Part shown: positions 2,882 through 38,802 of the stretch, one piece after another
How the letters are laid out: every line of letters begins with the position of its first letter
How positions within the stretch are numbered: the stretch's first letter is position 1
Assembly (NCBI GenBank): GCA_044892505.1
Contig: CM097883.1
Location: 95,542,001-95,606,000 of the forward strand
Direction: 5' to 3'
Length of the DNA stretch: 64,000 nt
Origin: Schmidtea nova
Lineage: Eukaryota
The notes under the pieces: model-generated
Told to the model about the DNA's origin: nothing
The model's input: only the letters and a program-made list of their open reading frames with translations
Database searches by the model: none
Program-made: the position numbers and the translations under genes

Positions 2882-3228
2882 TGTGAGAATATTGAAATTA
2901 AACAGTATTTAATTTTCAGTTTTTAATGGATATAATAAAATTAGATAATAAAATTATAAATTAGCATAGTAAATTAAATATAAATATTGAAGTTATTAAT
3001 TGGCTTGATTGTAAATTTCATATTTAAGAATAATTGAAAATTGAAAATATAAAATGTATATTGAATGCTTGTGTATGAATATTCCCTATTCAATTATTAA
3101 TTCTGCTTGCAAAAATAATATCCTCAAAGATAAAAAAAGAAATTGTTTTAATAATTACAGAAATTTTGTGTTGTTTTTAAAATATATCTTGAGAAATAAG
3201 GGATGTTCTTAATTTTCGAAACCAAACA
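2882..3228 (+). repeat. 5' LTR
   Basis: Begins tgtgagaata and ends aaaccaaaca; roughly 90-95% identical by eye to 10975-11318. Confidence 0.85.
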
Positions 3229-3234
3229 AATAAT

Positions 3235-3700
3235 ATGGCGACCACAATGGCCAATTTTATCAAGGCACCGGAAAATTTTGAGATGGTAACCAATGTCGAA
3301 GATTTTATAAAAGAAACAGAAAGATTTTTTGAATTAATGTCGATAGCTGAAGATTTTAAAGGAAGATTTGTCAAAGCTTTCTTATCAACGGATGCAATTA
3401 AAAATATGATCTTACCCATGAGGAAAAAAATTAAATGGATAGACTGAGAGGAGCCTTCAAAAAGCCAATGAATCTGATGGAAGACTTAAGTGAAGCGCTA
3501 GAATATAGACAAGGAGATGATTCCGCGGATGAATTCTGCGAAAAAATTGAGAAATTATCAAGAATTCTGAAACATGAATTTAATGAAGAAGAGCTCCAAA
3601 GATTTCTCATATTCAATGCAGTGGAAGACCAAGATTTGAAAAAGGATTTGAGATTAAATGAATATAAATCAGTGGATGAAATGAAAAAGAATCAAAAAAC
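3235..3700 (+). pseudogene. gag: Gag fragment, frameshifted near 3430
   Basis: MATTMANFIKAPENF...EDFIKETERFFEL... continues in another frame as YRQGDDSADEFCEKIEKL, typical of a retrotransposon gag capsid domain. Confidence 0.7.
3236..3245 (+). promoter_or_regulatory. Primer-binding site TGGCGACCAC (tRNA-Arg-type)
   Basis: Lies 7 nt after the LTR end and is complementary to the 3' end of metazoan tRNA-Arg(UCG) (...GUGGUCGCCA); overlaps the gag ATG at 3235. Confidence 0.65.
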
Positions 3701-6299
3701 ACGAAAAGGTACCGTAGTACAAGAAATTAACAGCAAAGTTAACAAGATACAAAAGAAGTGGACAAAGGAGCACCAAGAAGCATTCAATAAACTAAAAGAA
3801 AGATTGATAACAGCACCAGTGTTAAGATATCCAGATTTCGAAAAACAGTTTATAGTAATGACGGATGCCAGCGGGAAAGCCGTAGGAGCAGTCTTAGGCC
3901 AAGAAGAAGAGAAAGGGAAAGATTACGTAATAGCATATGCCAGTAAAACACTAAAAGGAGCACAGCTGAGGTATTCAACAATAGAAAAAGAATGTTACGC
4001 AATAGTATTCGCCCTAAAACAATTCAAACCATACATATATGGGACTGAAGTGATAATAAGAACAGACCATAAACCATTAGAAGGCTTATGGAAACATAAA
4101 GATACATCAAGTAGATTACTTAAATGGGCAATGAAAATACAAGACATGCACCTAAAAATTATATATAAACCAGGTAGAATAAATAAAAACGCAGATGCAC
4201 TATCAAGAATACCAGAATTAGGAGCACTTGAAATATTTGCACTAGTAGCAGAAAAACCAATCGATATATATGAGGAACAGATGAAAGACCCAGAGATCAG
4301 TAAAATAAGAAATGAAATCAGAAAAGAAAACAATTCAAAGTATAAAATATCAAAGAAATTAGTAGTAATAGAAGATTTCAATGGTAAGCAACTAATAGTA
4401 GTACCTCAGAAATTAAGACAAATACTCCTACTACAATATCACGATGGAGCATTAGGAGGTCACTTATCATCTAGAAAGACAGCAAGTAGATTATTACAAA
4501 AATATTACTGGGAAGAATTAAAGAAAGATGTTAAGAGATGGTGTAACGCGTGTACAATATGTGCAACAAGAAAAAATACAGGTACAAAAACAAAAGCGCC
4601 GTTACATCCCATTCCAGCAACGACATCACCAATGGAACTATGTGCCATGGATTTTCTATGTAAATTACCTACTACAATTAATGGGAATAAACATATACTA
4701 GTATTTAGTGATTATTTTACTAGATGGGCAGAAGCATTTCCAACAAAAGACGAAACAGCAGAAACAGTTGCTAAATTGCTTATAGAAAAAATTATTTTCA
4801 AGATAGGCACACCCAAAAGATTATTAACAGATAAAGGAACAAATTTTACTAGTGAATTAATAAAACGAGTAGCTAATATTTTTAACATGCAAAAGATCAA
4901 CACAACAGCGTATCACCCTCAAACTGATGGACTAGTAGAAAGATTTAATGGGACATTACTAAGCAGACTAGCTGTTTTTGTAGGAAAAAATCAAAATGAT
5001 TGGGACGAATACATAAGTCAATGCACATACATTCATAATATCACTCCAAACGAAACAACAGGGTATTCACCGTATTATTTAATGTTTTTAAGAGAACCAG
5101 CAACACCAATAGATACAATATTTGAACCTCGAGTATCACAATATTTAGATGCACCAGATTATGTCACACTAATGCAGGAAAAACTGCAAGAAGTGTATAA
5201 AGTAGCCAATCTAAAGGTCAAATATAGACAAGAACAGTACAAAGCCGACTACGACAAAAATAGTAAACCACACAACTTTAAAGTAGGTGATAAGGTTAGA
5301 CTTATGTCACCACAAGTAGGAAAGGGAAAAACAACAAAATTAGCAAGACTATATAAAGGCCCATATGAAGTAGTAAAAGTAATAAATGAGAATTTACACT
5401 TACAAAAACATAAAAACGAGGATCCAATAGTAGTACATGTCAACAGATGCAAGTTGGCGGAAGCCGAGGTCACGATAGATAAACCTCACAAGTATAATCT
5501 AAGATCTCATAACGAACTAATAATATCGGCTATCTTCTTAACAATCATAACATTTGTTGGCTCAACCGAAACAATAGAATTTGACAAAGTATTAATAAAA
5601 ATATCAACAAACGAAGTTAGAGCATTTATCATAAATAGAGGAGTAATTGATTTATACATGCAAACAACGAACGGGAAAAACCCAAAGATGATAAAAGGAA
5701 AAGACGACAGAACAACCAACGAAATCGAAAGAGGAAACTATATTAATTTCACAAAACTAACACCTAATACAATATACAGAATCTGCATACAGAGAAACAC
5801 AGATACAACAACATGGAGATGCAAAAAAATAAAAACAGAACAATTACCCAAGAATATAACAAAAAACCATAACATAACAAAAACACTCGATAAAATAAAA
5901 AGCACAACAACGACATCAGATAATATACTAAATACCACACCACATACAAACGAAATACCAACAAGCACTGGAATAGCCAAATTCCAAAAACAACACAATG
6001 CCAAAAAACAAAAACAAGAACCTATCAAAATAAGGCAAGGAAGACCAATAGTGATACATAACTTAGAGGAACTACAAGCATTTCGTAAAGAGGATAAAAA
6101 GCCACATTGGCCTTATTATGTCATCACAACATCAATAATAGCATTAGCAGTTTTAGCTTTAATAACTAGCGTACAAATTTATAAAAAGTACAAGTGGAAA
6201 AGGCAGCGGTATCGGAGCCGACTGGTCAGAAATGTACCAGGGCATTTCCATTTGGGCAAATATATACCAGGTGAATATACAAAATCCACATTGGTATAA
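3435..6299 (+). CDS. pol: Gag remnant fused to RT-connection/RNase H/integrase, then a C-terminal FN3-like + Thr/Lys stalk + transmembrane extension
   Basis: WTKEHQEAFNKLKERLITAPVL (connection); VMTDASG, YSTIEKECYAIV, TDHKPL, NADALSR (RNase H); HDGALGGH...CNACTIC (HHCC); MDFL, LTDKGTNF, YHPQTDGLVERFN (DDE); GPY/F. After YNLRS: hydrophobic LIISAIFLTIITFVGS, FN3-like FTKLTPNTIYRICIQ, TM YYVITTSIIALAVLALITSVQIY and basic tail KKYKWKRQRYRSR. Confidence 0.85.
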   Translation: MDRLRGAFKKPMNLMEDLSEALEYRQGDDSADEFCEKIEKLSRILKHEFNEEELQRFLIFNAVEDQDLKKDLRLNEYKSVDEMKKNQKTRKGTVVQEINSKVNKIQKKWTKEHQEAFNKLKERLITAPVLRYPDFEKQFIVMTDASGKAVGAVLGQEEEKGKDYVIAYASKTLKGAQLRYSTIEKECYAIVFALKQFKPYIYGTEVIIRTDHKPLEGLWKHKDTSSRLLKWAMKIQDMHLKIIYKPGRINKNADALSRIPELGALEIFALVAEKPIDIYEEQMKDPEISKIRNEIRKENNSKYKISKKLVVIEDFNGKQLIVVPQKLRQILLLQYHDGALGGHLSSRKTASRLLQKYYWEELKKDVKRWCNACTICATRKNTGTKTKAPLHPIPATTSPMELCAMDFLCKLPTTINGNKHILVFSDYFTRWAEAFPTKDETAETVAKLLIEKIIFKIGTPKRLLTDKGTNFTSELIKRVANIFNMQKINTTAYHPQTDGLVERFNGTLLSRLAVFVGKNQNDWDEYISQCTYIHNITPNETTGYSPYYLMFLREPATPIDTIFEPRVSQYLDAPDYVTLMQEKLQEVYKVANLKVKYRQEQYKADYDKNSKPHNFKVGDKVRLMSPQVGKGKTTKLARLYKGPYEVVKVINENLHLQKHKNEDPIVVHVNRCKLAEAEVTIDKPHKYNLRSHNELIISAIFLTIITFVGSTETIEFDKVLIKISTNEVRAFIINRGVIDLYMQTTNGKNPKMIKGKDDRTTNEIERGNYINFTKLTPNTIYRICIQRNTDTTTWRCKKIKTEQLPKNITKNHNITKTLDKIKSTTTTSDNILNTTPHTNEIPTSTGIAKFQKQHNAKKQKQEPIKIRQGRPIVIHNLEELQAFRKEDKKPHWPYYVITTSIIALAVLALITSVQIYKKYKWKRQRYRSRLVRNVPGHFHLGKYIPGEYTKSTLV

Positions 6300-6459
6300 T
6301 ACGTTTTGGTCAATAATAATAATTAAAATCATATATATTCGTATTTATATAGCGTATAAGGTTAAACCGACAATACGCCTTAAACAAAAATCTTTATCCT
6401 TTATTTTTAGAAAAGAATACACGAGCAAAACAAAGCAAGTTCCAACAAACTCCGAAAAC

Positions 6460-6700
6460 CCAATCAATCTCGTGAATTCTACACACCAATCAAATCATTG
6501 CGACAACCATTCAAAAATCTCAATAAATACAATCATCTCTTTTTTAAACTGTCACAACAAACAATCAAAAAACCCTACTAATTATCTCCATACAAAATAC
6601 CCAATCAATCTCGTCAATTCTATAAACCAATCGAATCGTTACGACAATTACCCATATATCTCAATATATTCAATTATATCTCTGTTAAACTGTCAAAACC
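6460..6700 (+). repeat. Imperfect ~140-bp direct duplication between ORF1 and ORF2
   Basis: ccaatcaatctcgtgaattctacacaccaatc... (about 6461) versus ccaatcaatctcgtcaattctataaaccaatc... (about 6601). Confidence 0.7.
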
Positions 6701-6762
6701 CTATTAATCATCTCTCAAATCAATATATCAAGAAATCAATTCGATACCAATCAAAAACAAAG

Positions 6763-8862
6763 ATGAATCAAAATCAACCTCATTTCAATCAATCAAGAAC
6801 CTACCAGAAATACACTTGTTTTATAAACAAACTCAACATGAGTTTTTATAAAAATCTACAGAACAAGATATGTACTGATGGAACCCCAATTACAATTCGC
6901 AGTTTCCCAAATCAAATATGTATCCCAAACGACATGAAAGTCGAAATAGAAGAACGGGAAATGCATCTGATAAAATTCAATGAGGCCCGAAGAGTGAAAC
7001 TCAAAGAGCTTATTGAAACCTTCGACAAATACCAAAACGTCGACAAAGAAGTTGCCGAAAATAAGAGAATCCCTCACAGATTAATATTCCACATGACAAA
7101 AACAGAAGTTGCAATATGTCAAAATAAAATCCCGTTAATTGTCACAAGCAACTGTTCAGCAGTTATTAAGTTAATAAGAAAAGACAGAAGCATGTCAAAC
7201 GATTTCAATGAGCTGACAGTGCAGATGAATAACCTACCATGTGTGATAGCAATCGAAGTGCTATATATCCCGACAATCCCAAATCCGTTCATAAAATTAA
7301 ACCCAATACATTCAATCCTACAAATAAATGAAGATATGATCAACCAGAAGATATCATTCACGAATCAAGAATTAACGACAGAAGAAAGGCATTCATTAAC
7401 TGTAATTGTGGATATAAAAGCAGTTCAAGATATAAACAAAAATCTCAGACCAGTGGAAATTTGTATCAGAAGCAGAAAAGGGGCAATTCTGTATAACAAA
7501 TTCATCACCCCAAGAACGAAAGTAGAAAAATTCTACACGGAAAAAACTAAAGCTACAAAAGAAAACATAATTGGAAATGAAGACGAATATAAATCCTTAA
7601 ATGAAATTCGAAACATTCTCTATGGAAAGATCATAGTTGGATTCAACATCATAGATAAGTTAAAACTATTGACGATAGATCTGGACAACATTATGGGCAT
7701 AAGAGAAATGGCACAGGATCGATTCATGTGTTCATTTGTAAAAAACGTGGCCCCACCAAAAATAAAAATATCAAATTTGGCTTACCAGGTAATCAATTAC
7801 CATAAAAGTTGGCATAAAGATAAAAAGTTAAATGATATATTGAGACAACCAGAACCATTCTCAACAAAGATCACCACAATGCTATTAAAAGTTATCTACG
7901 ATATCACAGAAAATAAATGGGAAGAAGTTGTCAAATGGGATTCCGCAACACTTCTTAAAAGGAAACAAGCAAAAGGAGAAGAACAACTAGAAACAATATT
8001 CGAAAACGAAACAGAGAGCGAAGCAGAAGGTGAGATAGAAAGTGAATATGAAGATGGAGAAGGCATGGAGCCGTCCCATGGGGAATCAACAAAAACCAAT
8101 CATAACAAACCAAAAAAGTCATTCATGGAAGAGCTCATGGACAGTGACGACGATGAACTCATGATCATAAAAGAAGAAATACCACTTATCGCTCCAACTA
8201 GAGGAATCAAAGCAGAACCCAAAATTCAAAATATTCTATATGAAAGAATGGACGAATGTGATATAGATGATGAATATTTCTCAGCAGATGAGAACATAGA
8301 AGAACCTTCAACCAGCAGTAACGACATCAAAATGGAAGAAGATAATGAAGAACCATCAACAAGTAATAATTACAACATAATGGAAGAGGATATCGGACCA
8401 GAACCAAACGTTGAAATGTTAGCCGACTGGACAGAACCAGAAGAATCAGATTTCATAATAGACAAAGACAAAAAGTATGTCTCAGAAAAAGATCTCTGCA
8501 CTCATTTTGGAAGACAAATTGAGCACGAGGAAACGATAAACCTTGCGATAAAAAATGGATTTCGAAAAACAACAATTCAAATAAAAGAGAAAAGAATTGA
8601 TTTAATATTGTGTGACAAGGGTAATGAGGACATTACTTTGACGGCCCGGGGAGGAATGTTGGATGATGAAGGTAAGCCCATCAATACATTCCTCCTATCA
8701 GAAAATTATAGTGTGGGGGGCAACAAATACAGAGTGAATATTTATGCAGAGCCTGTCGATACAACCAATATTCAAAAAGAAACAGAACCCAATATCAATC
8801 AGTACCCAGTGCACAATCAATCCAAGCACCAACCAGGATATCAACATCCATTTGATATTTAA
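6763..8862 (+). CDS. Retroelement accessory ORF2 with a degenerate REX4-like DEDDh exonuclease domain and an acidic C-terminal region
   Basis: Uninterrupted frame (open from 6232; probable start 6763 or 6838). VIVDIKAV...GAILYNKFITPRTKV...NILYGKIIVGFNIIDKLKLL...IREMA...KISNLA...IYDITENKWEE follows the REX4/RNase T motif order. Confidence 0.7.
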   Translation: MNQNQPHFNQSRTYQKYTCFINKLNMSFYKNLQNKICTDGTPITIRSFPNQICIPNDMKVEIEEREMHLIKFNEARRVKLKELIETFDKYQNVDKEVAENKRIPHRLIFHMTKTEVAICQNKIPLIVTSNCSAVIKLIRKDRSMSNDFNELTVQMNNLPCVIAIEVLYIPTIPNPFIKLNPIHSILQINEDMINQKISFTNQELTTEERHSLTVIVDIKAVQDINKNLRPVEICIRSRKGAILYNKFITPRTKVEKFYTEKTKATKENIIGNEDEYKSLNEIRNILYGKIIVGFNIIDKLKLLTIDLDNIMGIREMAQDRFMCSFVKNVAPPKIKISNLAYQVINYHKSWHKDKKLNDILRQPEPFSTKITTMLLKVIYDITENKWEEVVKWDSATLLKRKQAKGEEQLETIFENETESEAEGEIESEYEDGEGMEPSHGESTKTNHNKPKKSFMEELMDSDDDELMIIKEEIPLIAPTRGIKAEPKIQNILYERMDECDIDDEYFSADENIEEPSTSSNDIKMEEDNEEPSTSNNYNIMEEDIGPEPNVEMLADWTEPEESDFIIDKDKKYVSEKDLCTHFGRQIEHEETINLAIKNGFRKTTIQIKEKRIDLILCDKGNEDITLTARGGMLDDEGKPINTFLLSENYSVGGNKYRVNIYAEPVDTTNIQKETEPNINQYPVHNQSKHQPGYQHPFDI

Positions 8863-9060
8863 TATTTGATTAACATTCGACATTTGATATTTAATATTTG
8901 ATCCTTAACATTCGACATTTGATATTATTATTGGGAATGTGATATATTATTTCTTGTATATATTTTATTTCTAGTGTAAATATTTGATATGAACATTCAA
9001 CATTGGATATTATTATTTTTAGTTGGGAATGCGATATATTATTTTATTTCTTTTAAATGT
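8845..9060 (+). repeat. Short tandem repeats (acattcgacatttgatatttaatatttgat) in the ORF2 3' region
   Basis: Several ~30-60 bp imperfect copies directly after the ORF2 stop. Confidence 0.65.
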
Positions 9061-9719
9061 ATATAATTTAGAAAATTATTATTAATATTTATTTTAAAAT
9101 GTACTTTTTAATGAAATATTTTATTTCAATGGATATTGGAATTATTTTATTTCAACGGATATTATAATCGGGGCAACATAATTGTAGCATGGAAAAATAG
9201 ATAAAGGAAATTATTTTAATTGTTTTGTTTGGGTAGCGAGTTGTCATGAGTGAAATAATTGTTTTGTTCCAATAACGAAATTATTTTAATTGTTTCAATA
9301 TCTAGATGAAATTATTTTAATTATTTCAATATTATTATATGAAAAATTTTAGTATATAAAGAAGTGAAAATTTTTAAAATTTGCCCACAATTTTTTGAAA
9401 TTCAATTTCAATCAAAATTTTGCGACATAAAATTTCTCAAAGGGTAATCCTGCGAGAACTCAAAATTTACGGACAGCACAAAAACGTCCAACACGAAATT
9501 GTTATAGCTAAAATAAACATAATACATTCACGTAAATAACAAGCACACAGTAGGACACGCAAAAATATCTTTTAAATAAACTTTGTAAAACAGTTATACA
9601 GATTTGAAAGTGTAATTTATAACTTTTGATTTTGATTTCGGTAAATTTTGTTATTGAATAAATTTTTCAAAAAACTTGATCTTATTTTTATATACTATAG
9701 TCTACACCAGTGCACGTTG

Positions 9720-10974
9720 AGATCTAAAAATCTTGGACCTCAACACAATTCCAGACTTGGATCAATTTTTTAAGTAGTTTGGAAATAGAATTTCAATACA
9801 GGAAAGGAGAAGAACATTGCAATGCAGATGCATTGTCAAGAAGGGAATATATGACATGCGTTCAATGCCAAACCATTCATATTAATCCAAAGACAGGAAA
9901 ACTCAAAACGAAGCTCTTGGCAATAATGACAGAAAACCCAGAACAAGAATGGTAAAGGAATTCAAAAGAAATTACAGAAATTATTAACAACATAAAACAA
10001 AAAAGGGCAATAAATTCTTAATGAAAAGTAGAGTAATATTCACAGAAAACAATAAAATATGGATTCCGGATGATGAAAGAATTAAATTCATTAAAAAGTA
10101 TCTTAAGAAACTGTGTCATGCTGGACCAATAAAAATTGAGAAATATGTGTCAAATAAATTTTCAATGAAACACATGAAACGAATGATCCAAGACGTAGTT
10201 CAAAGTTGTGAAAATTGTCAAAAGAGGAAAGCTGCAACTACACAGACTAAAGAGAAAATTTGTAAATTGTCAGAACCAGGTTTATTTGAAACAATATTTA
10301 TAGATTTTTGTGGTCCACTGAAACAAAGTCAGTATGGAATGAGATATATCTTAGGAATTATCGATAGTTTTAGTAAACATGTGATACTAAATGCAGAAAA
10401 ATCACAAGACGAAAAAACTGTTACAACAATTTTAAGAAATAATTGGATTTTAAAATAAGGAGCACCGAGATTCATACATTGTGACAGGGGTAAAGCAAAG
10501 TTATGGATAATTTAATGAAGGAGCATAACATTAAAATTATATTTTCAAGCCCTTACCATCATTCGGCGAATGGCCTAATCGAAATTAGAGATGCCATTCA
10601 TGTCACTTTAAAAGATCAGATCACAAGAACTGGGTGGAGTTATTACCAGAAATCGAGTTTATGCTGAATTCCACATTCCAGAAAACAATTAAGCAAACTC
10701 CATGTGAAAGAGTGTTTGGAAAAAGTATATATAAAGAATGGTCTACAAATATGTCAATTGAGAATACAAGTTTTGATGAAATAACCGAAAGAAAATTAAA
10801 AATAGGAGACATAGTGCTAGTAAAAAGAAATGATAACTACAAAGACGATGATAGATACTTTGGACCTGCAAAAGTGATAAAACAAATTCCGGAGAAGAGC
10901 TATGAAGTAGAACTTGTTAATGGAAAAAGGTTTTCACGAAATATAGAGTGGCTAAAGCCTTTTAAAAAAGGGGA
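9720..10974 (+). pseudogene. pol: Second, decayed gypsy RNase H C-terminus + integrase
   Basis: QTWINFLSSLEIEFQYRKGEEHCNADALSR; CHAGP...CENCQKRK; IFIDFCGPL; IDSFSK; IHCDRG; YHHSANGLIE; YFGPAKV. Contains stops and frameshifts. Confidence 0.85.
10964..10974 (+). promoter_or_regulatory. Polypurine tract aaaaaagggga
   Basis: Immediately precedes the 3' LTR. Confidence 0.7.
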
Positions 10975-11318
10975 TATGAGAATAATTTAATAAAACAGTA
11001 TTTAATTTTCAGTTTTTAATGGATATAATAAAATTAGATAATAATATTATAAATTAGCATAGTAAATTAAATATAAATATTGAAGTTATTAATTGGCTTG
11101 ATTGTAAATTTCATATTTAAGAATGATTGAAAATTAATATATAAAATGTATATTGAATGCTTGTGTATGAATATTCCCAATTCAATTATTAACTCTGCTT
11201 GCAAAGATATCCTCAAAAATAAAAAAAAGAAATTGTTTGAATTATAACAGAAATTTTGTGTTATTTTTAAAATATATCTTAAGAAATAATGGATGTTCTT
11301 AATTTGCGAAACCAAACA
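10975..11318 (+). repeat. 3' LTR
   Basis: Direct repeat of 2882-3228. Confidence 0.85.
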
Positions 11319-11628
11319 AATAGAAAGGAAGAATTGTTTTATAAAGCAAAAAAACGAAGAAATTGTTTAAAAAAGTACAAAAAAAGTTAGTTAAAAAAGT
11401 CGACAAGAGGAAACCATTTTAAAAAGCACAAAGCACTATACATTTTTAAAGCAGGAATATCAAAGTCATTTTAAAAGAATAAAGATAAATCAATATCTAA
11501 TTTGTCGAAACACTATTTAATTTGTTCATCTAAGACACTGTATTGAAGCGAGTCAACCAAACGATTCATTAAGCACCTGATACTTTATAAATAAATGTTG
11601 TATTTTATTTTATTCTATTTAGTATTAA

Positions 11629-11932: not shown

Positions 11933-14900
11933 TTAACATTCAATGGAATAATGTAATTGATGGCCATTCTTTTTCGAAAATTTGTAACGAGTATTTCTAT
12001 TATTGGTCCCATCAAATTGTTCTCCTTTATAAAATCTGCAAAAACAATTAATTTAAAAATATATTTTTAAAGTTTTACGTTTGATTTGAAACAAGATATA
12101 AATATTTCTTATATTTGTTGTTTGATTGTTTATCTTGTGTAACAAAAGCAGATGTAACATTTGGAATGGTCTCACCTCCGAAATTAATGAGTTCGCCCAC
12201 ACTGTGAATGCTGTCATGATACTCAGCAAAATCATTAGTTAGATAGATGTGTATAAGTTTATTATCCTGGAAACGTACGCTACATTTAAAAGCCGAGATA
12301 TATAAAAACATACCTTAATAGAATGTATCAGAGTGATTTTTCCAAAAATGAATCTCAAAAAGGCATTAGTAATTTTCCCAGGAGTTTTTTTCCATGAAAT
12401 GTATCTTACATTGGTAAAATTGCTGATATCGGGGCCACTACCAATCGTAATTATGTCATCTGAAAACATAGATATGAAATTATCAAATAAATAAAAAAAA
12501 ATACTTTTAAATGCAACTAATTCATTTCTATTCGGATCAAAGAATAATGAATCGGCATTCGAAAACCGTTTGTCTAATATAACAGCCTTGAAGCTAGAAT
12601 CAAGAGCAAAATCTTTCATTTTCAAAGCGTGATTTGAATCGGTCAATAGATATATAGAATCCAGATCTACAACGCGCACAATTTATATGATAGCACATAT
12701 AAAAATTTACAATTGAAAATAGTTTTAATTTTTTGAAGTCCACATTTATTTGGCAAATTTGTAACGGAAGTGGAATATCTGATTTGACCAGTCGTTAACG
12801 ACTGAGGCAATGTCGATTGAGTCCTTTTTGGGTCGGTTTTCACACCAGTTTTATTTTTATTGGAGACATTGTGATCAAAAATAGAATTTGGTTTATTTGT
12901 TGACAAAATTAAATGGTTAGTTTTCTCGTTTTCAAAATTAAATTCATCAAAAGAATCACAAGGAACTCTATAAAATTAATGACTTAAAATATTAGAAAAA
13001 TAAATATTACTTCATTATTTTATCTAAAGTTGTCCAGTTCGCAACATTAATCTCAAAAAATTCCTTCAAACGAGCAGAATTTTCAGCTACATAAATTCTA
13101 TTTACAAAATAAATAAATAAGTAAATCAAAATTTAATAGTTACTTTTCACCATCAACAAAATATAATTGTTTCTGTCCCAACGAATTAGTAGTAAATGTT
13201 GAATTTACATTGATACTGATGTTTTGATTATTAACATTACGAATAATATCATTAATATTATTAGCATGACTTGAAAATTGTACAGAATTTCCACGCAGAA
13301 TACCAGTAACAGCTTGATTGTTCTAATGAATCAAAATTTTTAAATTAGAAGATTATTTTTGAAATCCAACTTGAATTATCCACATCTTTGAATAATTTAT
13401 ATTTTTCTGCTGCGGACAAAATACAGCCTTAATTGGACCTTTAAATATTCCATTTGACTGAATTTTGAGTTCAGAAATTTTCAAATTGCTCAAATCAGAA
13501 CCAGACGCCGTAAATATTTTATCATCTGAAAAATTAAATCTCAATTTAATAATTTAATATTTTGTTATAAAATACTTTTAAAAAATATAATTTTTTGAAT
13601 TCGTTCGTCGAAAAACATTGAATCAGATTCAAAAACCTCTTTTGTCAATTTAATTGGTCTAAATGACCAATCGATTTCCCCAGTGGATAAAATTCGATAT
13701 ATCATTCCGTTACTTTTAGTAATAAATATTTGATGATTTATATCTAAATTACAAATGAATTATGGAAAATTATGTAATAAGTTACATACAGTTAAAAACT
13801 CTAAAAATATTGCAGTCAGAATGAATTAAATTATTATCTTTGGAATTTGGAATATTTATTATAACGTTGTTATTATTAACAGTATTGGAAGTATAAAATA
13901 AATTTCGATTTTTCTTCGAAACGGTAAAATTGTTTTTCTTTACATCATCAATAGTTCTGACAGCAAAAGTTTTTTTATCAATGCTAATTGTCTTATTCAA
14001 AACATGCAAAACTATTTTGCTATCCGAATTCTCGTCAACAGAAACTGAAGGATTTTGTTCACATCCACCGTCACTTCCACAACCTCCATTATAATGATTA
14101 TTAATATTCACATTAATAACATTTATTTGGCCGACTGCAGTGTTTACATTTGAAAAAGAATTGTTTGAAACATATGAAATATTATAGTAATTTTTATAAA
14201 TTGGACATTCAGGTTCATGGAAACATTTTGGAGGAGGACATGGGGGATTATTTGGAGGACGGTTTGGAGATGGTGGACAAGTACAAGGAACGTCAGATGA
14301 ATGATGAGAATGAGTTGTCAAATGGTGATCTTCAGTTGTCGAAGTGGCAAGTGTGGCAGTTCCAGTAGTTACACTTTCTGAAGCAGTGGATGATTGTTGA
14401 GTTTGTTCAGTGGTATTGATATCAGTTGAAACTTGTTCACTCGTTACTTTCGATGGTGAAGTGGTTTGTTCTTCAGTTATCGAAGTGGCAGGTGTGGCAG
14501 TTCCAGTAGTTACACTTTCTGAAGCAGTGGATGATTGTTGAGTTTGTTCAGTGGTATTGATATCAGTTGAAACTTGTTCACTTGTTACTTTCAATGGTGA
14601 AGTTGTTTGTTCTTCAGTTTTTGAAGTGGCAGGTGTGGCAGTTCCAGTAGTTACACTTTCTGAAGCAGTGGATGATTGATGAGTTTGTTCAGTGGTATTG
14701 ATATCAGTTGAAACTTGTTCACTAGTTACTTTCGATGGTGAAGTGGTTTGTTCTTCAGTTGTCGAAGTGGCAGGTGTTGCAGTTCCAGTAGTTAGACTTT
14801 CTGAAGCAGTGGATGATTGATGAGTTTGTTCAGTGGTATTGATATCAGTTGAAACTTGTTCACTAGTTACTTTCGATGATGAAGTGGTTTGTTCTTCAGT

Positions 14901-17900
14901 TGTCGAAGTGGCAGGTGTGGCAGTTCCAGTAGTTACACTTTCTGAAGCAGTGGATGATTGTTGAGTTTGTTCAGTGGTATTGATATCAGTAGAAACTTGT
15001 TCACTAGTTACTTTCGATGATGAAGTGGTTTGTTCTTCAGTTGTCGAAGTGGCAGGTGTGGCAGTTCCAGTAGTTACACTTTCTGAAGCAGTGGATGATT
15101 GTTGAGTTTGTTCAGTGGTATTGATATCAGTTGAAACTTGTTCACTAGTTACTTTCGATGATGAAGTGGTTTGTTCTTCAGTTTTTGAAGTGGCAGGTGT
15201 GGCAGTTCCAGTAGTTACACTTTCTGAAGCAGTGGATGATTGTTGAGTTTGTTCAGTGGTATTGATATCAGTTGAAACTTGTTCACTAGTTACTTTCGAT
15301 GATGAAGTTGTTTGTTCTTCAGTTGTCGAAGTGGCAGGTGTGGCAGTTCCAGTAGTTACACTTTCTGAAGCAGTGGATGATTGTTGAGTTTGTTCAGTGG
15401 TATTGATATCAGTTGAAACTTGTTCACTTGTTACTTTCGATGGTGAAGTGGTTTGTTCTTCAGTTGTCGAAGTGGCAGGTGTGGCAGTTCCAGTAGTTAC
15501 ACTTTCTGAAGCAGTGGATGATTGTTGAGTTTGTTCAGTGGTATTGATATCAGTTGAAACTTGTTCACTAGTTACTTTCGATGATGAAGTGGTTTGTTCT
15601 TCAGTTGTCGAAGTGGCAGGTGTGGCAGTTCCAGTAGTTACACTTTCTGAAGCAGTGGATGATTGTTGAGTTTGTTCAGTGGTATTGAAATCAGTTGAAA
15701 CTTGTTCACTAGTTACTTTCGATGATGAAGTGGTTTGTTCTTCAGTTGTCGAAGTGGCAGGTGTGGCAGTTCCAGTAGTTACACTTTCTGAAGCAGTGGA
15801 TGATTGTTGAGTTTGTTCAGTGGTATTGATATCAGTTGAAACTTGTTCACTTGTTACTTTCGATGGTGAAGTGGTTTGTTCTTCAGTTGTCGAAGTGGCA
15901 GGTGTGGCAGTTCCAGTAGTTACACTTTCTGAAGCAGTGGATGATTGTTGAGTTTGTTCAGTGGTATTGATATCAGTTGAAACTTGTTCACTTGTTACTT
16001 TCGATGGTGAAGTGGTTCGTTCTTCAGTTGTCGAAGTGGCAGGTGTGGCAGTTCCAGTAGTTACACTTTCTGAAGCAGTGGATGATTGTTGAGTTTGTCC
16101 AGTGGTATTGATATCACTAGAAACTTGTTCACTAGTTACTTTCGATGATGAAGTGGTTTGTTCTTCAGTTTTTGAAGTGGCAGGTGTGGCAGTTCCAGTA
16201 GTTACACTTTCTGAAGCAGTGGATGATTGTTGAGTTTGTTCAGTGGTATTGATATCAGTTGAAACTTGTTCACTAGTTACTTTCGATGATGAAGTGGTTT
16301 GTTCTTCAGTTTTTGAAGTGGCAGGTGTGGCAGTTCCAGTAGTTACACTTTCTGAAGCAGTGGATGATTGTTGAGTTTGTTCAGTGGTATTGATATCAGT
16401 TGAAACTTGTTCACTTGTTACTTTCAATGGTGAAGTTGTTTGTTCTTCAGTTGTCGAAGTGACAGGTGTGGCAGTTCCAGTAGTTACACTTTCTGAAGCA
16501 GTGGATGATTGTTGAGTTTGTTCAGTGGTATTGATATCAGTTGAAACTTGTTCACTAGTTACTTTCGATGATGAAGTGGTTTGTTCTTCAGTTTTTGAAG
16601 TGGCAGGTGTGGCAGTTCCAGTAGTTACACTTTCTGAAGCAGTGGATGATCGTTGAGTTTGTTCAGTGGTATTGATATCAGTTGAAACTTGTTCACTTGT
16701 TACTTTCGATTGTGAAGTGGTTTGTTCTTCAGTTTTTGAAGTGGCAGGTGTGGCAGTTCCAGTAGTTACACTTTCTGAAGCAGTGGATGATTGTTGAGTT
16801 TGTTCAGTAGTATTGATATCAGTTGAAACTTGTTCACTTGTTACTTTCAATGGTGAAGTTGTTTGTTCTTCAGTTTTTGAAGTGACAGGTGTGGCAGTTC
16901 CAGTAGTTACACTTTCTGAAGCAGTGGATGATTGTTGAGTTTGTTCAGTGGTATTGATATCAGTTGAAACTTGTTCACTTGTTACTTTCGATGGTGAAGT
17001 GGTTTGTTCTTCAGTTGTCGAAGTGGCAGGTGTGGCAGTTCCAGTAGTTACACTTTCTGAAGCAGTGGATGATTGTTGAGTTTGTTCAGTGGTATTGATA
17101 TCAGTTGAAACTTGTTCACTTGTTACTTTCGATGGTGAAGTGGTTTGTTCTTCAGTTGTCGAAGTGGCAGGTGTGGCAGTTCCAGTAGTTACACTTTCTG
17201 AAGCAGTGGATGATTGTTGAGTTTGTTCAGTGGTATTGATATCAGTTGAAACTTGTTCACTTGTTACTTTCGATGGTGAAGTGGTTCGTTCTTCAGTTGT
17301 CGAAGTGGCAGGTGTGGCAGTTCCAGTAGTTACACTTTCTGAAGCAGTGGATGATTGTTGAGTTTGTCCAGTGGTATTGATATCACTAGAAACTTGTTCA
17401 CTAGTTACTTTCGATGATGAAGTGGTTTGTTCTTCAGTTTTTGAAGTGGCAGGTGTGGCAGTTCCAGTAGTTACACTTTCTGAAGCAGTGGATGATTGTT
17501 GAGTTTGTTCAGTGGTATTGATATCAGTTGAAACTTGTTCACTAGTTACTTTCGATGATGAAGTGGTTTGTTCTTCAGTTTTTGAAGTGGCAGGTGTGGC
17601 AGTTCCAGTAGTTACACTTTCTGAAGCAGTGGATGATTGTTGAGTTTGTTCAGTGGTATTGATATCAGTTGAAACTTGTTCACTTGTTACTTTCAATGGT
17701 GAAGTTGTTTGTTCTTCAGTTGTCGAAGTGACAGGTGTGGCAGTTCCAGTAGTTACACTTTCTGAAGCAGTGGATGATTGTTGAGTTTGTTCAGTGGTAT
17801 TGATATCAGTTGAAACTTGTTCACTAGTTACTTTCGATGATGAAGTGGTTTGTTCTTCAGTTTTTGAAGTGGCAGGTGTGGCAGTTCCAGTAGTTACACT

Positions 17901-20900
17901 TTCTGAAGCAGTGGATGATCGTTGAGTTTGTTCAGTGGTATTGATATCAGTTGAAACTTGTTCACTTGTTACTTTCGATTGTGAAGTGGTTTGTTCTTCA
18001 GTTTTTGAAGTGGCAGGTGTGGCAGTTCCAGTAGTTACACTTTCTGAAGCAGTGGATGATTGTTGAGTTTGTTCAGTAGTATTGATATCAGTTGAAACTT
18101 GTTCACTTGTTACTTTCAATGGTGAAGTTGTTTGTTCTTCAGTTTTTGAAGTGACAGGTGTGGCAGTTCCAGTAGTTACACTTTCTGAAGCAGTGGATGA
18201 TTGTTGAGTTTGTTCAGTGGTATTGATATCAGTAGAAACTTGTTCACTTGTTACTTTCGATGATGAAGTGGTTTGTTCTTCAGTTTTTGAAGTGGCAGGT
18301 GTGGCAGTTCCAGTAGTTACACTTTCTGAAGCAGTGGATGATTGTTGAGTTTGTTCAGTGGTATTGATATCAGTTGAAACTTGTTCACTTGTTACTTTCG
18401 ATGATGAAGTGGTTTGTTCTTCAGTTTTTGAAGTGGCAGGTGTGGCAGTTCCAGTAGTTAGACTTTCTGAAGCAGTGGATGATTGTTGAGTTTGTTCAGT
18501 GGTATTGATATCAGTAGAAACTTGTTCACTAGTTACTTTCGATGATGAAGTGGTTTGTTCTTCAGTTTTTGAAGTGGCAGGTGTGGCAGTTCCAGTAGTT
18601 ACACTTTCTGAAGCAGTGGATGATTGTTGAGTTTGTTCAGTGGTATTGATATCAGTTGAAACTTGTTCACTTGTTACTTTCGATTGTGAAGTGGTTTGTT
18701 CTTCAGTTTTTGAAGTGGCAGGTGTGGCAGTTCCAGTAGTTACACTTTCTGAAGCAGTGGATGATTGTTGAGTTTGTTCAGTGGTATTGATATCAGTAGA
18801 AACTTGTTCACTTGTTACTTTCGATGATGAAGTGGTTTGTTCTTCAGTTTTTGAAGTGGCAGGTGTGGCAGTTCCAGTAGTTACACTTTCTGAAGCAGTG
18901 GATGATTGTTGAGTTTGTTCAGTAGTATTGATATCAGTTGAAACTTGTTCACTTGTTACTTTCGATGGTGAAGTGGTTTGTTCTACAGTTTTTGAAGTGT
19001 CAGGTGTGGCAGTTCCAGTAGTTACACTTTCTGAAGCAGTGGATGATTGTTGAGTTTGTTCAGTGGTATTGATATCAGTTGAAACTTGTTCACTTGTTAC
19101 TTTCGATGGTGAAGTGGTTTGTTCTTCAGTTTTTGAAGTGGCAGGTGTTGCAGTTCCAGTAGTTACACTTTCTGAAGCAGTGGATGATTGTTGAGTTTGT
19201 TCAGTGGTATTGATATCAGTTGAAACTTGTTCACTTGTTACTTTCAATGGTGAAGTTGTTTGTTCTTCAGTTTTTGAAGTGGCAGGTGTGGCAGTTCCAG
19301 TAGTTACACTTTCTGAAGCAGTGGATGATTGTTGAGTTTGTTCAGTGGTATTGAAATCAGTTGAAACTTGTTCACTAGTTACTTTCGATGATGAAGTGGT
19401 TTGTTCTTCAGTTGTCGAAGTGGCAGGTGTGGCAGTTCCAGTAGTTACACTTTCTGAAGCAGTGGATGATTGTTGAGTTTGTTCAGTGGTATTTATATCA
19501 GTAGAAACTTGTTCACTTGTTACTTTCGATGATGAAGTGGTTTGTTCAGTTGTCAAAGTCTCAGGTGTGGCAGTTCCAGTAGTTACACTTTCTGAAGCAG
19601 TGGATGATTGTTGAGTTTGTTCAGTGGTATTGATATCAGTAGAAACTTGTTCACTTGTTACTTTCGATGATGAAGTGGTTTGTTCTTCAGTTTTTGAAGT
19701 GACAGGTGTGGCATTTCCAGTAGTTACACTTTCTGAAGCAGTGGATGATTGTTGAGTTTGTTCAGTGGTATTGATATCAATTGAAACTTGTTCACTTGTT
19801 ACTTTCGATGATGAAGTGGTTTGTTCAGTTGTCGAAGTCTCAGGTGTGGCAGTTCCAGTAGTTACACTTTCTGAAGCAGTGGATGATTGTTGAGTTTGTT
19901 CAGTGGTATTGATATCAGTTGAAACTTGTTCACTTGTTACTTTCGATTGTGAAGTGGTTTGTTCTTCAGTTTTTGAAGTGGCAGGTGTGGCAGTTCCAGT
20001 AGTTACACTTTCTGAAGCAGTGGATGATTGTTGAGTTTGTTCAGTGGTATTGATATCAGTAGAAACTTGTTCACTTGTTACTTTCGATGATGAAGTGGTT
20101 TGTTCTTCAGTTTTTGAAGTGGCAGGTGTGGCAGTTCCAGTAGTTACACTTTCTGAAGCAGTGGATGATTGTTGAGTTTGTTCAGTGGTATTGATATCAG
20201 TTGAAACTTGTTCACTTGTTACTTTCGATGATGAAGTGGTTTGTTCTTCAGTTTTTGAAGTGGCAGGTGTGGCAGTTCCAGTAGTTACACTTTCTGAAGC
20301 AGTGGATGATTGTTGAGTTTGTTCAGTGGTATTGATATCAGTTGAAACTTGTTCACTTGTTACTTTCGATGGTGAAGTGGTTTGTTCTTCAGTTTTTGAA
20401 GTGGCAGGTGTTGCAGTTACAGTAGTTACACTTTCTGAAGCAGTGGATGATTGTTGAGTTTGTTCAGTGGTATTGATATCAGTTGAAACTTGTTCACTTG
20501 TTACTTTCGATGGTGAAGTGGTTTGTTCTTCAGTTGTCGAAGTGGCAGGTGTGGCAGTTCCAGTAGTTACACTTTCTGAAGCAGTGGATGATTGTTGAGT
20601 TTGTTCAGTGGTATTGATATCAGTAGAAACTTGTTCACTAGTTACTTTCGATGATGAAGTGGTTTGTTCTTCAGTTTTTGAAGTGGCAGGTGTGGCAGTT
20701 CCAGTAGTTACACTTTCTGAAGCAGTGGATGATTGTTGAGTTTGTTCAGTGGTATTGATATCAGTTGAAACTTGTTCACTTGTTACTTTCAATGGTGAAG
20801 TTGTTTGTTCTTCAGTTGTCGAAGTGGCAGGTGTGGCAGTTCCAGTAGTTACACTTTCTGAAGCAGTGGATGATTGTTGAGTTTGTTCAGTGGTATTGAT

Positions 20901-29900: not shown

Positions 29901-30661
29901 TTTCGCATAAAGATACTTCACAAGTTCATTTTTTACGTGCTTTAGAAACTTCTGGTAATCTTCATTGTTATTTGTAAGATTCTTTGGTACGTCTATTTTT
30001 GGGAATTCAATATATACTGTCTTTCTTTGATTCGGGTTTATTACACCTAAACAATAAATTATTATATTTTTATTAATACATTTTCTACTCACCGTGCTTT
30101 TTCATTTCTCTGACAATGATCTTTTGCAGCCTTACTGTAATCTCAACTATTTCGTCGTATTTGGATTTGGATTTCTGTATTTTCATGTACAGTTTAATAT
30201 TCGATGCATCATTCGAATCAGAACTGTATATGATGTCACCTTGTTTTTTCAATTCATCGCCTATCCGTTTTCTAATTACTTCTCTAAGCAACCTGATTGT
30301 CTTTTCATCACTGAGCTTTCCAGATTTATTAATATAAAAGCTTAATTTTTTTAAGTCGACTTTTGGAGGTTCGCTTTTGATAAATCCTAAAGTTAGATTA
30401 ATTCTTTGTGAATTTGTGATGGGATTTATTTCCATACCTAAATTTTCCAATTCTTTATCAACAAGGTAAGTAATGATTTCCTTGATTTTCAAGTATTCCT
30501 TTTGCAATTTCACCTGTTCGACAGAATCTTGTCCTTGTATCTGACTGGCTGTGCCGTAAATACCTAAATACAAAAATGTTTAGAAATTTATAAGCTTTTC
30601 CCATCTGTGAATACTCACATAATATGAACCATGTTAAACCCAAAATTGTGGATTTATACAT
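11933..30661 (-). CDS. Giant secreted mucin with two C-terminal hemopexin-like modules (paralogue 1, ~6,050-6,100 aa, ~12 exons)
   Basis: Exon 1 30661-30619 + exon 2 30563-30093 give signal peptide MYKSTILGLTWFILCIYGTAS. Exon 3 30046-13790 is a stop-free 16.3-kb frame. Downstream exons 13743-13576, 13525-13371, 13322-~13142 etc. are separated by 45-56 bp GT-AG introns. Hemopexin-like DSMFFDERIQKIIFFK and ADSLFFDPNRNELVAFK; ends ...HYSIEC-stop at 11933. Confidence 0.85.
14335..29040 (-). repeat. Coding tandem array, 141-bp unit (47 aa: STASESVTTGTATPATSKTEEQTTSSSKVTSEQVSTDINTTEQTQQS), ~104 copies
   Basis: Period measured at 141 bp (gtggcag at 14353 and 14494); a few 138-bp units lack one Glu codon; frame preserved throughout. 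Confidence 0.97.
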
Positions 30662-33899: not shown

Positions 33900-34000
33900 T
33901 TGGTGCTGTGTCAACGTTGTGAAATGACAAGGCAGGTGAGCAACCTCGCGGCTACTATTCCCTTGTTTATTCACGGGTCCACCACTACCGATAGAAGGTG
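33900..34000 (+). other. Conserved structured motif, copy 2
   Basis: gtgaaatgacaagg pairs with ccttgtttattcac around caggtgagcaacctcgcggctact; followed by cacgggtcc...ctaccgatagaaggt. Confidence 0.6.
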
Positions 34001-34164
34001 TTTGTGGATTTCTTTCGGTCCCTTTATAACGCGCTCTTTCCTTTGCTCTAGGGTTAATTCAGTTATTAGAGTACCTGTAACCTCAAATAAATCGGTTTTA
34101 CTTTACATTTTAATTTACAATCATGCTTCAAGCAAACAACTCAAGTCATTCCGTGATAATACAT

Positions 34165-34803
34165 TTATTTATAATTTAACAAAACAGATGGCCGGATCAC
34201 GTTTAATAGTTCCTGTTCGGAGAGTCCGCTGAGTAGGTCAACCTCAATGCCCAAACGTTCGGCATAGGCTCGACGCTCTCGACGTTTCTTTGCTCCGAGG
34301 CGATTTCGACGCTTTGTTCTCTGGGATCCTTTCGGAATTATCGTTGTTGATTCAGTAGTCGTTGTTGCGGTCGTCTCCGTTTCAGTCTGGGTACTTGTGG
34401 TGACCGCTATCGAGTCTACCCATCTGTTGAATGTACTTGCCCTGATCATTGGGCGTAACTGTTCCGTGATAAACTCTTGCTTCGAGGCTCTTAGATAATT
34501 GGTCAGTTCCAATTTTAATGCTGCGACTTCTCTTGCCTGTTCTTCGGCTGCCTGTTCTGCTCGGTATCTCGCCTGTAGGATGGCCTTAACCCTCTCGGGG
34601 TTGAACCATGTCGTCTTTACTCGTTGATGTTCCTCGCTTAACTGACGTAAGCGGCTCTCGAGGACCTTGGAGCGAGCCTTGTGCTCACGAGCATCCTGCC
34701 TATAGTTTCGAGAATTGTTCACGTTCATGTCTACAAAATGTGATGTTAATTTATGTAGTGGAAATCTATCCGTCTCTCTATTCGTGTCTTTACGATCAAT
34801 CAA
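34165..34803 (-). CDS. Coiled-coil protein with Thr-rich linker and Arg/Lys-rich C-terminus (probable retroelement accessory ORF)
   Basis: Intact 212-aa frame; heptad-like AEQAAEEQAREVAALKLELTNYL; basic KRRNRLGAKKRRERRAY. No family recognised. Confidence 0.5.
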   Translation of the reverse strand: MIDRKDTNRETDRFPLHKLTSHFVDMNVNNSRNYRQDAREHKARSKVLESRLRQLSEEHQRVKTTWFNPERVKAILQARYRAEQAAEEQAREVAALKLELTNYLRASKQEFITEQLRPMIRASTFNRWVDSIAVTTSTQTETETTATTTTESTTIIPKGSQRTKRRNRLGAKKRRERRAYAERLGIEVDLLSGLSEQELLNVIRPSVLLNYK

Positions 34804-38673: not shown

Positions 38674-38802
38674 NNNNNNNNNNNNNNNNNNNNNNNNNNN
38701 NNNNNNNNNNNNNNNNNNNNNNNNNNNNNNNNNNNNNNNNNNNNNNNNNNNNNNNNNNNNNNNNNNNNNNNNNNNNNNNNNNNNNNNNNNNNNNNNNNNN
38801 NN
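38674..38802. other. Assembly gap (N run)
   Basis: 129 N. Confidence 1.

Follow-up and report, generated by a model that had tools for sequence, protein, structure and literature searches.

We found that the integrase of a Ty3/gypsy retrovirus-like element is followed, in the same open reading frame and without a stop, by a putative small membrane protein of cell-surface type in an AT-rich 64,000-nucleotide stretch of Schmidtea nova DNA (GCA_044892505.1, contig CM097883.1, positions 95,542,001 to 95,606,000; hereafter the window). Its few known relatives share this layout and we found no description of it in the literature read, though the copy in the window is defective and partly deleted. 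ORF 3435..6299 (954 aa; this and all features between 2884 and 11322 are on the forward strand) runs from a gag-like start and the end of RT through RNase H and integrase into 269 further codons (5490-6296, stop codon 6297-6299), which encode a signal-like segment, a roughly 90-residue beta-rich domain, a stalk, one transmembrane helix, a basic stop-transfer stretch and a short tail ending in S-T-L-V. The preliminary description of this locus, which reported a gypsy integrase read through into a type I membrane protein with an FN3-like domain, is confirmed as an observation. On the other hand, its interpretation as a captured cell-surface module, acting as an attachment protein, decoy or membrane anchor and released from Pol by signal peptidase, is supported only in part, as described below. 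That description did not notice that the ORF has no protease or RT domain and begins with about 90 gag-like residues, that the tail ends in S-T-L-V, and that an 876-codon ORF overlaps the end of the tail.

In Pfam searches, the RNase H domain (3759..4145, aa 109-237) matched RT_RNaseH and RT_RNaseH_2 (E 2.8e-38 and 2.5e-37), and the integrase (4401..5453) matched the H2C2 zinc domain (aa 323-381, E 2.2e-19) and the rve catalytic core (aa 398-495, E 3.7e-10), with weak matches of an SH3-like C-terminal domain (aa 618-673) to Integrase_p58_C and SH3_Tf2-1. Thus the order of domains is that of a Ty3/gypsy (Metaviridae) Pol, and 2813 gypsy-type Pols matched at E <= 1e-20. The last stretch conserved with relatives is the junction motif K-Y-N-L-R-S (5490..5507; R-Y-x-L-R-S in relatives), and after it no significant Pfam family was found, except for a meaningless match to CoV_S2 at E 0.027. 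The composition-based chance of an open frame over the 269 codons is 1.8e-9 and none of 5000 shuffles was open, while the other two forward frames of that stretch hold 29 and 17 stops. The whole ORF contains no stop or frameshift (P(open) 4.6e-34).

The tail has the sequence features of a type I single-pass membrane protein. It starts with a signal-peptide-like hydrophobic segment (5517..5564; Kyte-Doolittle 12-mer score 2.71 at tail residues 10-21), modelled as a helix and followed by a V-G-S|T candidate cleavage site, at which cleavage is inferred. Then come the beta-rich domain (5565..5843), a polar, Thr/Lys/Asn-rich stalk (5844..6113) that is predicted to be disordered and has 3 of the 4 N-x-S/T sequons, and a 23-residue transmembrane helix (6114..6182; 19-mer score 2.23 at tail residues 210-228), which was modelled as a long helix with the highest pLDDT of the model. 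The cytoplasmic tail (6183..6296) consists of a basic stop-transfer stretch (6183-6221; K/R-rich tail residues 232-244) and an end in S-T-L-V (6285-6296), which is a class I PDZ-ligand-type C-terminus.

The tail sequence has no detectable homologue. A word-based search with residues 686-954 found nothing, phmmer against 1.84 billion protein representatives gave a single weak low-complexity hit in the stalk, and PDB sequences gave no match at E <= 10. Capture of the module from the host is not shown. In a MAFFT alignment with full-length relatives, the tail was smeared over Pol, and so it was folded as a single sequence. The resulting AlphaFold model, of low confidence (pLDDT 47.8), has six strands in the domain, and its top 50 Foldseek matches are mostly FN3 domains, but only at E 0.025-0.12 (top matches at E 0.025-0.1, TM-score up to 0.64 on the target). 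The domain also carries hallmark residues of FN3, which are an aromatic residue in strand B and L-x-P-x-T-x-Y-x-h-x-h at the E-F turn and strand F, namely L-T-P-N-T-I-Y-R-I-C-I (L-x-P-x-T-x-Y-x-h-x-h; 5757-5792, tail residues 90-101) with F about 44 residues upstream, and the same pattern with W or F occurs in the relatives' repeats, though a short motif is weak evidence on its own. Pfam fn3 was not matched by the window tail and gave only sub-threshold hints in relatives (fn3 E 0.21 in P0002 and fn3_2 E 0.69 in P0010; P numbers denote gypsy-type Pols retrieved by similarity). A model of relative P0012, also of low confidence (pLDDT 44.4), matched Ty3 and foamy-virus integrases and then tandem FN3 pairs at E 1e-5 to 3e-4. 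That the latter matches lie in the tail is our inference, because it is the only all-beta stretch of that size. An FN3-like fold is thus favoured, with one copy of the domain in the window.

To get insights into the origin of the continuation, we compared it with the closest integrases. P0002-P0012 are 43-52% identical to the window's integrase, and all others are 40% or less. The closest relatives (P0003, P0004, P0005, P0006, P0010, P0012 and P0127) carry the same order of parts in frame after the junction motif R/K-Y-x-L-R-S. In the P0002-P0012 group, extensions of 370-730 residues follow this motif and carry a hydrophobic core, one to three repeats with the L-x(5-7)-Y-x-h-x-h motif, sequons, one transmembrane segment 45-95 residues from the end, and ends T-L-V (three relatives, as in the window), T-A-V and E-I-V. 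A class I PDZ-type end occurs in 5 of 7 membrane-bearing tails against 1 of 109 other gypsy Pols (Fisher p 8e-7, though the sequences are not independent), and it is kept among near-identical copies. Gypsy Pols outside this clade (P0013 onward) with extensions over 60 residues have no transmembrane segment. However, one clade member with a long extension, P0008, has protease-like domains and no membrane segment, and the family is tiny in the databases, with about eight clusters that are mostly single metagenome contigs. Moreover, no sequence homology links the window tail to the relatives' tails: phmmer gave E >= 0.07 in a set of nine, a profile of their repeats scored 2.7, a value that 74 of 1000 shuffles reach, and a search with the tail of P0010 found only P0012. 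Common origin therefore rests on position, order of parts, motif and the C-terminal residues. An accident of this copy, such as a lost stop running into unrelated or non-coding sequence or an in-frame insertion into a host exon (for example of a host FN3 gene), might be suggested by the lack of homologues and by the rearranged copy, but it is highly improbable given the open-frame statistics, the shared order of parts in relatives from other sources, including full-length Pols, and the shared C-terminal residues.

Relative P0127 is a single 3735-residue ORF containing Gag with a zinc knuckle, a gB-like viral fusion glycoprotein (PF24664, E 1.2e-91), protease, RT, RNase H, integrase and the FN3-like tail, and its four hydrophobic segments give an alternating, self-consistent topology. 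Its best solved match is Ty3 (E 2e-128). The tail thus does not stand in for a separate env, but is a second membrane protein. That the tail itself is the fusogen was rejected, because no fusogen appeared among its Foldseek matches in PDB or the viral library BFVD, P0127 has a separate one, and an ectodomain of about 180 residues is too small. The tail changes far faster than the integrase: P0010 and P0012 are 87% identical in the integrase and 38% in the tail, and P0003 and P0005 are 68% and 26%. The near-identical copies P0003 and P0127 differ at 1 of 1200 Pol residues and 11 of 444 tail residues (p 4.6e-6) with the frame kept, an excess that, at the protein level, fits relaxed constraint as well as diversifying selection.

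Taken together, we consider it moderately likely that the continuation is the genuine C-terminal module of the Pol polyprotein of a small, little-sampled lineage of Ty3/gypsy elements. Our analysis shows that the module is coding, that it sits in frame after a conserved integrase end, that it has the parts of a single-pass type I membrane glycoprotein with an FN3-like beta domain (two or three in relatives), and that the nearest relatives share this layout although the tail sequence has diverged beyond recognition. The rest is inferred from sequence, including glycosylation, surface display, PDZ binding and any role in transfer between cells. In this view, the hydrophobic segment following the cytosolic Pol would take the chain to the ER membrane during translation and pass the FN3 part into the lumen, and host signal peptidase would cut after the small-residue site to free a small surface glycoprotein, whose cytoplasmic end may dock on PDZ scaffold proteins at cell contacts. 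Since a full-length relative already encodes a gB-like fusion glycoprotein, the FN3 protein would most likely be an accessory envelope or surface protein for attachment or targeting at cell-cell contacts, and its fast turnover fits a host-facing surface. A candidate small-residue (-3,-1) site within 10 residues of the hydrophobic core in 7 of 8 tails fits release by signal peptidase. It is possible, though unlikely, that the segment is instead an uncleaved signal-anchor and the module tethers Pol and integrase to internal membranes as a two-pass anchor, bringing the enzymes to where the envelope protein and particles assemble without release of a free surface protein, because the module is always made as part of Pol, no conserved methionine precedes the core, P0127 has alternating membrane segments and P0004 shows no candidate site. 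However, one to three FN3-like repeats, a stalk with sequons and a conserved S/T-x-V end are far more than a tether needs. A decoy or interference protein, mimicking a host receptor-type FN3 protein or blocking the element's own receptor, and so protecting expressing cells from further copies or dampening host responses rather than helping particles attach, is also doubtful. The best structural matches include cytokine-receptor FN3 domains, the nearest, non-significant matches in the viral library are small type I immune-modulator-like glycoproteins of herpes- and poxviruses, and the sequence turns over very fast, but all structural matches are weak and come from low-confidence models, no host sequence relative was found among the 1.84 billion representatives, and nothing separates this reading from an attachment role.

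The Ty3/gypsy elements with a GAG-ENV-POL order are reported from nematodes, flatworms and bryozoans (Sacco et al., 2022, J Gen Virol 103:1739; Chary and Hayashi, PMC13524379), and P0127, with which the window's integrase groups, resembles them in its Ty3/gypsy-type Pol and in a gB-like or RNA-virus-type fusion glycoprotein between Gag and protease. However, Chary and Hayashi describe only chromodomains at the Pol C-terminus and do not mention fibronectin, fused or PDZ, and thus the FN3-like, transmembrane and PDZ-ligand-type module after the integrase is an added feature. Nematode belpaoviruses (Atlas virus, Cer13) also encode, after the integrase in one Gag-Pol-Env ORF without a stop, a glycoprotein with a C-terminal transmembrane helix (PMC9094657), which must use internal membrane-insertion signals. 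On the other hand, these belong to BEL/Pao and the protein is a phlebovirus-like Gn-Gc class II fusogen of about 500 or more residues, whereas our tail is a small FN3-like protein with no Gc-like match. In chromoviruses, a non-enzymatic targeting module, the chromodomain, directly follows the integrase, and several of the more distant Pols found here carry PF00385, but that module is a nuclear chromatin reader that stays on the integrase, while the part described here is built for the secretory pathway and is probably cut off. Flavivirus-type polyproteins and bunyavirus glycoprotein precursors alternate cytosolic and lumenal parts along one chain and are cut by host signal peptidase after internal hydrophobic segments; the segments of P0127 give such a pattern, though no relatedness is implied and cleavage is only inferred in this lineage. 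A PDZ-binding motif in the HTLV-1 Env cytoplasmic tail, also a type I membrane glycoprotein, is reported to regulate trafficking (Ilinskaya et al., 2010, cited in PMC3395148), but there it sits on the fusogenic Env itself, whereas here the putative PDZ-ligand-type end sits on a separate small FN3-like protein.

Gypsy-type elements with envelope genes are the invertebrate counterpart of retroviruses, and how they pass between cells, for instance from soma to germline, is an open question. The envelope genes known so far are all fusogens taken from other viruses. A second, non-fusogenic surface protein made as the last part of Pol, built from cell-adhesion-type domains and ending in a scaffold-docking motif, would be a new kind of accessory gene for LTR retroelements, and would show that these elements can use flavivirus-style membrane-threaded polyproteins. 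More tentatively, and rather unlikely on present evidence, one polytopic polyprotein of invertebrate elements may carry a two-part envelope that arose inside Metaviridae, with a gB-like fusogen between Gag and protease and a fast-evolving array of FN3 domains on a stalk for attachment or targeting, the latter steering particles or producing cells to PDZ-organised cell contacts. In any case, long integrase extensions in helminth-like genomes may be real genes, which is a warning for annotation.

The copy in the window cannot work on its own. Two LTRs were found at 2884..3232 (5', about 349 bp) and 10977..11322 (3'), 93.4% identical over 350 columns, with a primer-binding-site-like stretch at 3235..3250 (containing TGGCGACCAC) and a polypurine-tract-like A6G4 at 10964..10973, both read directly from the sequence, but no target-site duplication was recognised. 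The gag-like remnant (3235..3700), whose last part forms the first ~90 residues of the long ORF, is broken by one frame break and cut short by one large internal deletion. It matched no Pfam gag family, and its naming is inferred from position after the primer-binding site and from composition. Similarity to Pol starts only at about 3702-3720, at the very end of RT, and no RVT_1 or protease family was found in the ORF, although both domains are present in P0003, P0005, P0006 and P0127. Their absence is attributed to one deletion, and the window copy is a deletion derivative. A tblastn search of the window with P0127 found no trace of its glycoprotein, which falls in the deletion. In addition, the remnant of a second gypsy RNase H end and integrase (9737..10990; Integrase_H2C2 E 1.8e-10), only about 24% identical to the first integrase, lies in three frames inside the same LTR pair, is broken at least three times by frame changes or stops, and ends at the polypurine tract by the 3' LTR. 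The unit 2884-11322 is thus not one ordinary element but chimeric. No LTRs of the focal fragment were found, and the fragment lies in an LTR pair that seems to belong to another, decayed element.

Downstream, ORF 6232..8862 (876 aa, +1 frame; P(open) 8e-30), which has not been shown to belong to the same element, overlaps the end of the tail. It is very unlikely that both long ORFs are kept open because the host has taken them over as its own genes, no longer part of a mobile element. About 5.4 kb stays open beside the broken gag-like part and second integrase and between LTRs differing by 6.6%, and the first ORF starts with its own ATG after the loss of protease and RT, but a younger fragment in an older element explains this contrast equally well, and an RNase H and integrase fused to a membrane protein has no obvious host use. 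Three non-LTR ORFs elsewhere in the window had no exact record in the public collection, an Rfam search found nothing, and a GIY-YIG (Penelope-like) reading of ORF 39166-39744 was not supported by Pfam. The downstream ORF matched no Pfam family even at E <= 10, while phmmer against PDB matched a stretch at about 7474-7731 to ISG20 residues 33-117 (1wlj_A, E 1.6e-4) and to ISG20L2 (E 0.13). In this alignment, the histidine-aspartate pair of the second motif of ISG20/REXO-type DEDDh exonucleases is not matched residue for residue, and exonuclease activity is thus doubtful. Vesta/Juno LTR retrotransposons of bdelloid rotifers carry, as separate ORFs, small ORF3 proteins with transmembrane segments of unknown role and ORF3s with DEDD-type exonuclease domains of the RNase D-like DEDDy type, with no FN3 or PDZ-type end reported (PMC5408684). 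The window likewise has a membrane module and a downstream ORF with an ISG20-like stretch. The rest of the downstream ORF consists of a C-terminal part with no match, an acidic region, and a low-complexity N-terminal part with a 141-bp tandem pair (6455-6699).

The window holds an ORF at 3435-6299 (+, 954 aa), in which a Pfam search found RT_RNaseH at aa 109-237, the integrase zinc domain at 323-381, the rve core at 398-495 and weak SH3-like integrase-end matches at 618-673, with nothing significant after them. The frame continues for another 269 codons (5490-6296), while the two other forward frames of that stretch hold 29 and 17 stops. From the local base composition, the chance of an open frame is 1.8e-9, and none of 5000 shuffles was open; accident was considered as a rival explanation of this continuation. 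All of the parts listed in the preliminary description are present, namely, a hydrophobic segment (5517-5564) followed by V-G-S|T, a beta-rich domain (5565-5843) with L-T-P-N-T-I-Y-R-I-C-I, a polar stalk with sequons, a 23-residue hydrophobic helix (6114-6182) and a K/R-rich stretch (6183-6221). The tail has four sequons in all. Thus, the initial observation is confirmed, though it had been overlooked that the chain ends in S-T-L-V.

With regard to the surroundings, LTRs of about 349 bp lie at 2884-3232 and 10977-11322 and are 93.4% identical. A PBS-like stretch follows the first LTR, and an A6G4 tract precedes the second. The long ORF is not a full Pol, because it has no protease or RT domain and its similarity to other Pols starts only at the very end of RT. 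Its first ~90 residues continue a gag-like reading frame, which starts after the PBS and is broken once. Moreover, a second RNase H end and integrase of a different lineage lies at 9737-10990 (+), which is only about 24% identical to the first, is broken at least three times and ends exactly at the polypurine tract and the 3' LTR, so that the LTR pair probably belongs to this decayed element and not to the intact fragment. No LTRs of the focal fragment were found. The unit is therefore a chimera or nest: the LTRs and the decayed integrase look like one old element, whereas the intact RNase H, integrase and tail, perhaps with the following ORF, look like a fragment of another. In total, the gag-like gene carries one frame break and one truncating deletion, and the focal Pol carries one large deletion (protease and RT) with no stops or frameshifts in what remains. 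Host co-option of this particular copy is a rival explanation.

By sequence, the tail is not related to anything in the collections searched. A word-based search over residues 686-954 found nothing, phmmer against 1.84 billion representatives gave one weak hit in the low-complexity stalk, and PDB sequences gave none. On the other hand, a search with residues 105-700 found 2813 gypsy Pols, among which a small group of relatives, P0002-P0012, stands out at 43-52% identity, the rest being at 40% or less. The relatives come from soil and gut metagenomes, and all comparisons with them were made at the protein level on sequences returned by the protein searches. In P0003, P0004, P0005, P0006, P0010 and P0012 of this group, the chain goes on after the same junction motif (R-Y-x-L-R-S) for 370-730 residues. 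Each extension has a hydrophobic core, one to three beta-type repeats with an L-x(5-7)-Y-x-h-x-h motif and an upstream W or F, sequons and a polar stalk, one membrane segment 45-95 residues from the end, a basic stretch, and an end of T-L-V (P0005, P0010, P0012), T-A-V (P0004) or E-I-V (P0006). P0003 and P0005 hold protease, RT, RNase H and integrase before the extension, so this is a Pol fusion in full-length proteins. In contrast, gypsy Pols outside this group (P0013 onward) have short extensions without membrane segments. P0008 is an exception within the group, as its extension carries two extra retropepsin-like domains after the integrase and a zinc-finger-like stretch but no membrane module; P0004 also has one such extra domain, located before the signal-like segment.

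An S/T-x-V/I/L end occurs in 5 of 7 membrane-bearing tails against 1 of 109 other Pols (Fisher p 8e-7), although the sequences are related to each other. A small-residue (-3,-1) site lies within 10 residues of the hydrophobic core in 7 of 8 tails; nevertheless, an uncleaved membrane tether for Pol is a rival to release by predicted cleavage. It should be noted that the window tail cannot be tied to the tails of the relatives by sequence statistics: phmmer gives E >= 0.07 in a set of nine, and a profile HMM built from natural repeat segments of the relatives scores 2.7 on the window tail, which 74 of 1000 shuffles reach. Common origin rests on position, order of parts, the motif and the C-terminal residues.

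To get insights into the fold, a single-sequence model of the window tail was made (pLDDT 47.8), which shows six strands in the domain, a disordered stalk and a long helix at the membrane segment. Its Foldseek matches in PDB are not significant (E 0.025-0.12) but are almost all FN3 domains, including receptor phosphatase, cytokine-receptor common gamma chain, integrin beta4, and fibronectin repeat 6 with a TM-score of 0.64 on the target. In the viral library, nothing reaches 1e-3 and no fusogen appears. The model of P0012, built on an alignment of 8 sequences, also has a low pLDDT (44.4); it matches Ty3 and foamy-virus integrases first and then tandem FN3 pairs (fibronectin, neogenin, tenascin, DCC, NCAM, Robo3) at E 1e-5 to 3e-4. 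Pfam gives only sub-threshold fn3 hints in the relatives. We regard the FN3 fold as likely but not shown for the window copy.

The tail changes much faster than the integrase. P0010 and P0012 are 87% identical in the integrase and 38% in the tail, P0003 and P0005 are 68% and 26%, and the window against all relatives is about 50% and 21-28%. Moreover, the near-identical copies P0003 and P0127 differ at 1 of 1200 residues from protease to integrase and at 11 of 444 in the tail (p 4.6e-6). Similarly, three 1294-residue copies in the P0004 cluster differ at 0 of 568 residues in RNase H and integrase and at 5-6 of 726 residues downstream, and all three keep the frame and the T-A-V end. At the protein level, these differences may reflect either diversifying selection or relaxed constraint. 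A decoy or interference protein is a further rival for the role of the module.

The genome plan of the lineage is seen in P0127, a member of the P0003 cluster, which is a single 3735-residue ORF on an 11.5-kb metagenome contig. Pfam finds, in order, a Gag zinc knuckle (298-312), PF24664 'viral fusion glycoprotein' of Monjiviricetes (E 1.2e-91, reaching to about residue 1912), protease (two protease-like domains), RT, RNase H and integrase, and these are followed by the FN3-like tail, all in one reading frame. Hydrophobic segments lie at about 1270, 1837 and 3642, in addition to the signal-like core before the tail, and they give an alternating predicted topology in which Gag and Pol are cytosolic and both ectodomains are lumenal, like a flavivirus-like polytopic polyprotein for a retroelement. 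This order matches the published GAG-ENV-POL gypsy elements with gB-type envelope genes in nematodes, bryozoans and flatworms (PMC13524379, citing Sacco et al., 2022). The former paper mentions only chromodomains at the Pol C-terminus and holds none of the words fibronectin, fused or PDZ, and other literature searches for such a module found nothing. A single Gag-Pol-Env polyprotein is known in nematode belpaoviruses (PMC9094657). The window itself shows no trace of the fusion glycoprotein, which would fall in the deleted stretch.

Taken together, our analysis demonstrates that the module is a conserved, coding part of Pol with the architecture of a type I membrane protein. The most likely mechanism beyond this is inferred: the module would be inserted co-translationally by the internal hydrophobic segment, cut from the integrase by signal peptidase, glycosylated and displayed on membranes, while its tail would dock on PDZ scaffolds, and it may serve as an attachment or targeting partner of the separate fusogen. 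The interpretation in the preliminary description was partly supported. A PDZ-binding motif on a retroviral envelope tail has one published precedent (in the reference list of PMC3395148).

The end of the tail is overlapped by another ORF at 6232-8862 (+, 876 aa, +1 frame, P(open) 8e-30). Its first ~220 residues are of low complexity and include a 141-bp tandem pair (6455-6699), the two copies of which are 81% identical. A middle stretch (about 7474-7731) matches residues 33-117 of the antiviral exonuclease ISG20 (E 1.6e-4) and ISG20L2 (E 0.13) among PDB sequences, but no Pfam family is reached and the second exonuclease motif is not kept residue for residue. It could be a captured, possibly inactive exonuclease-like gene. 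Exonuclease-type extra ORFs of another DEDD class are known in rotifer LTR elements (PMC5408684).

The window is 25-32% G+C outside its repeat arrays and contains N runs at 38674-38802, 51465-51713 and 57179-57701. The literature context and the soil and gut metagenome sources of the relatives make a helminth-like invertebrate a reasonable guess for the host, but no more than that. At 13782-30092 (-) and 60167-64000 (-), there is a 5436-codon open frame made mostly of about 104 copies of a 141-bp unit (a 47-residue Ser/Thr-rich repeat, 96% matches) with unique N- and Cys/Pro-rich C-terminal parts, which looks like a mucin-like gene, and a second array of the same unit, which starts at 60664 and runs off the window and suggests a tandem paralogue. 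The period of this array equals that of the tandem pair at 6455-6699, but the sequences did not match each other in the self-comparison. Further gypsy debris includes a third Pol fragment (RT and RNase H part) at 31558-32399 (-), lying in two frames and about 33% identical to its best match. A G+C-rich island at 34000-36000 (45.6% against about 30% around it) carries ORFs of 212 and 116 codons on the minus strand that match no Pfam family, and a Tc1/mariner-type transposase helix-turn-helix remnant (HTH_SB, E 4.9e-7) lies at 46262-46639 (+).
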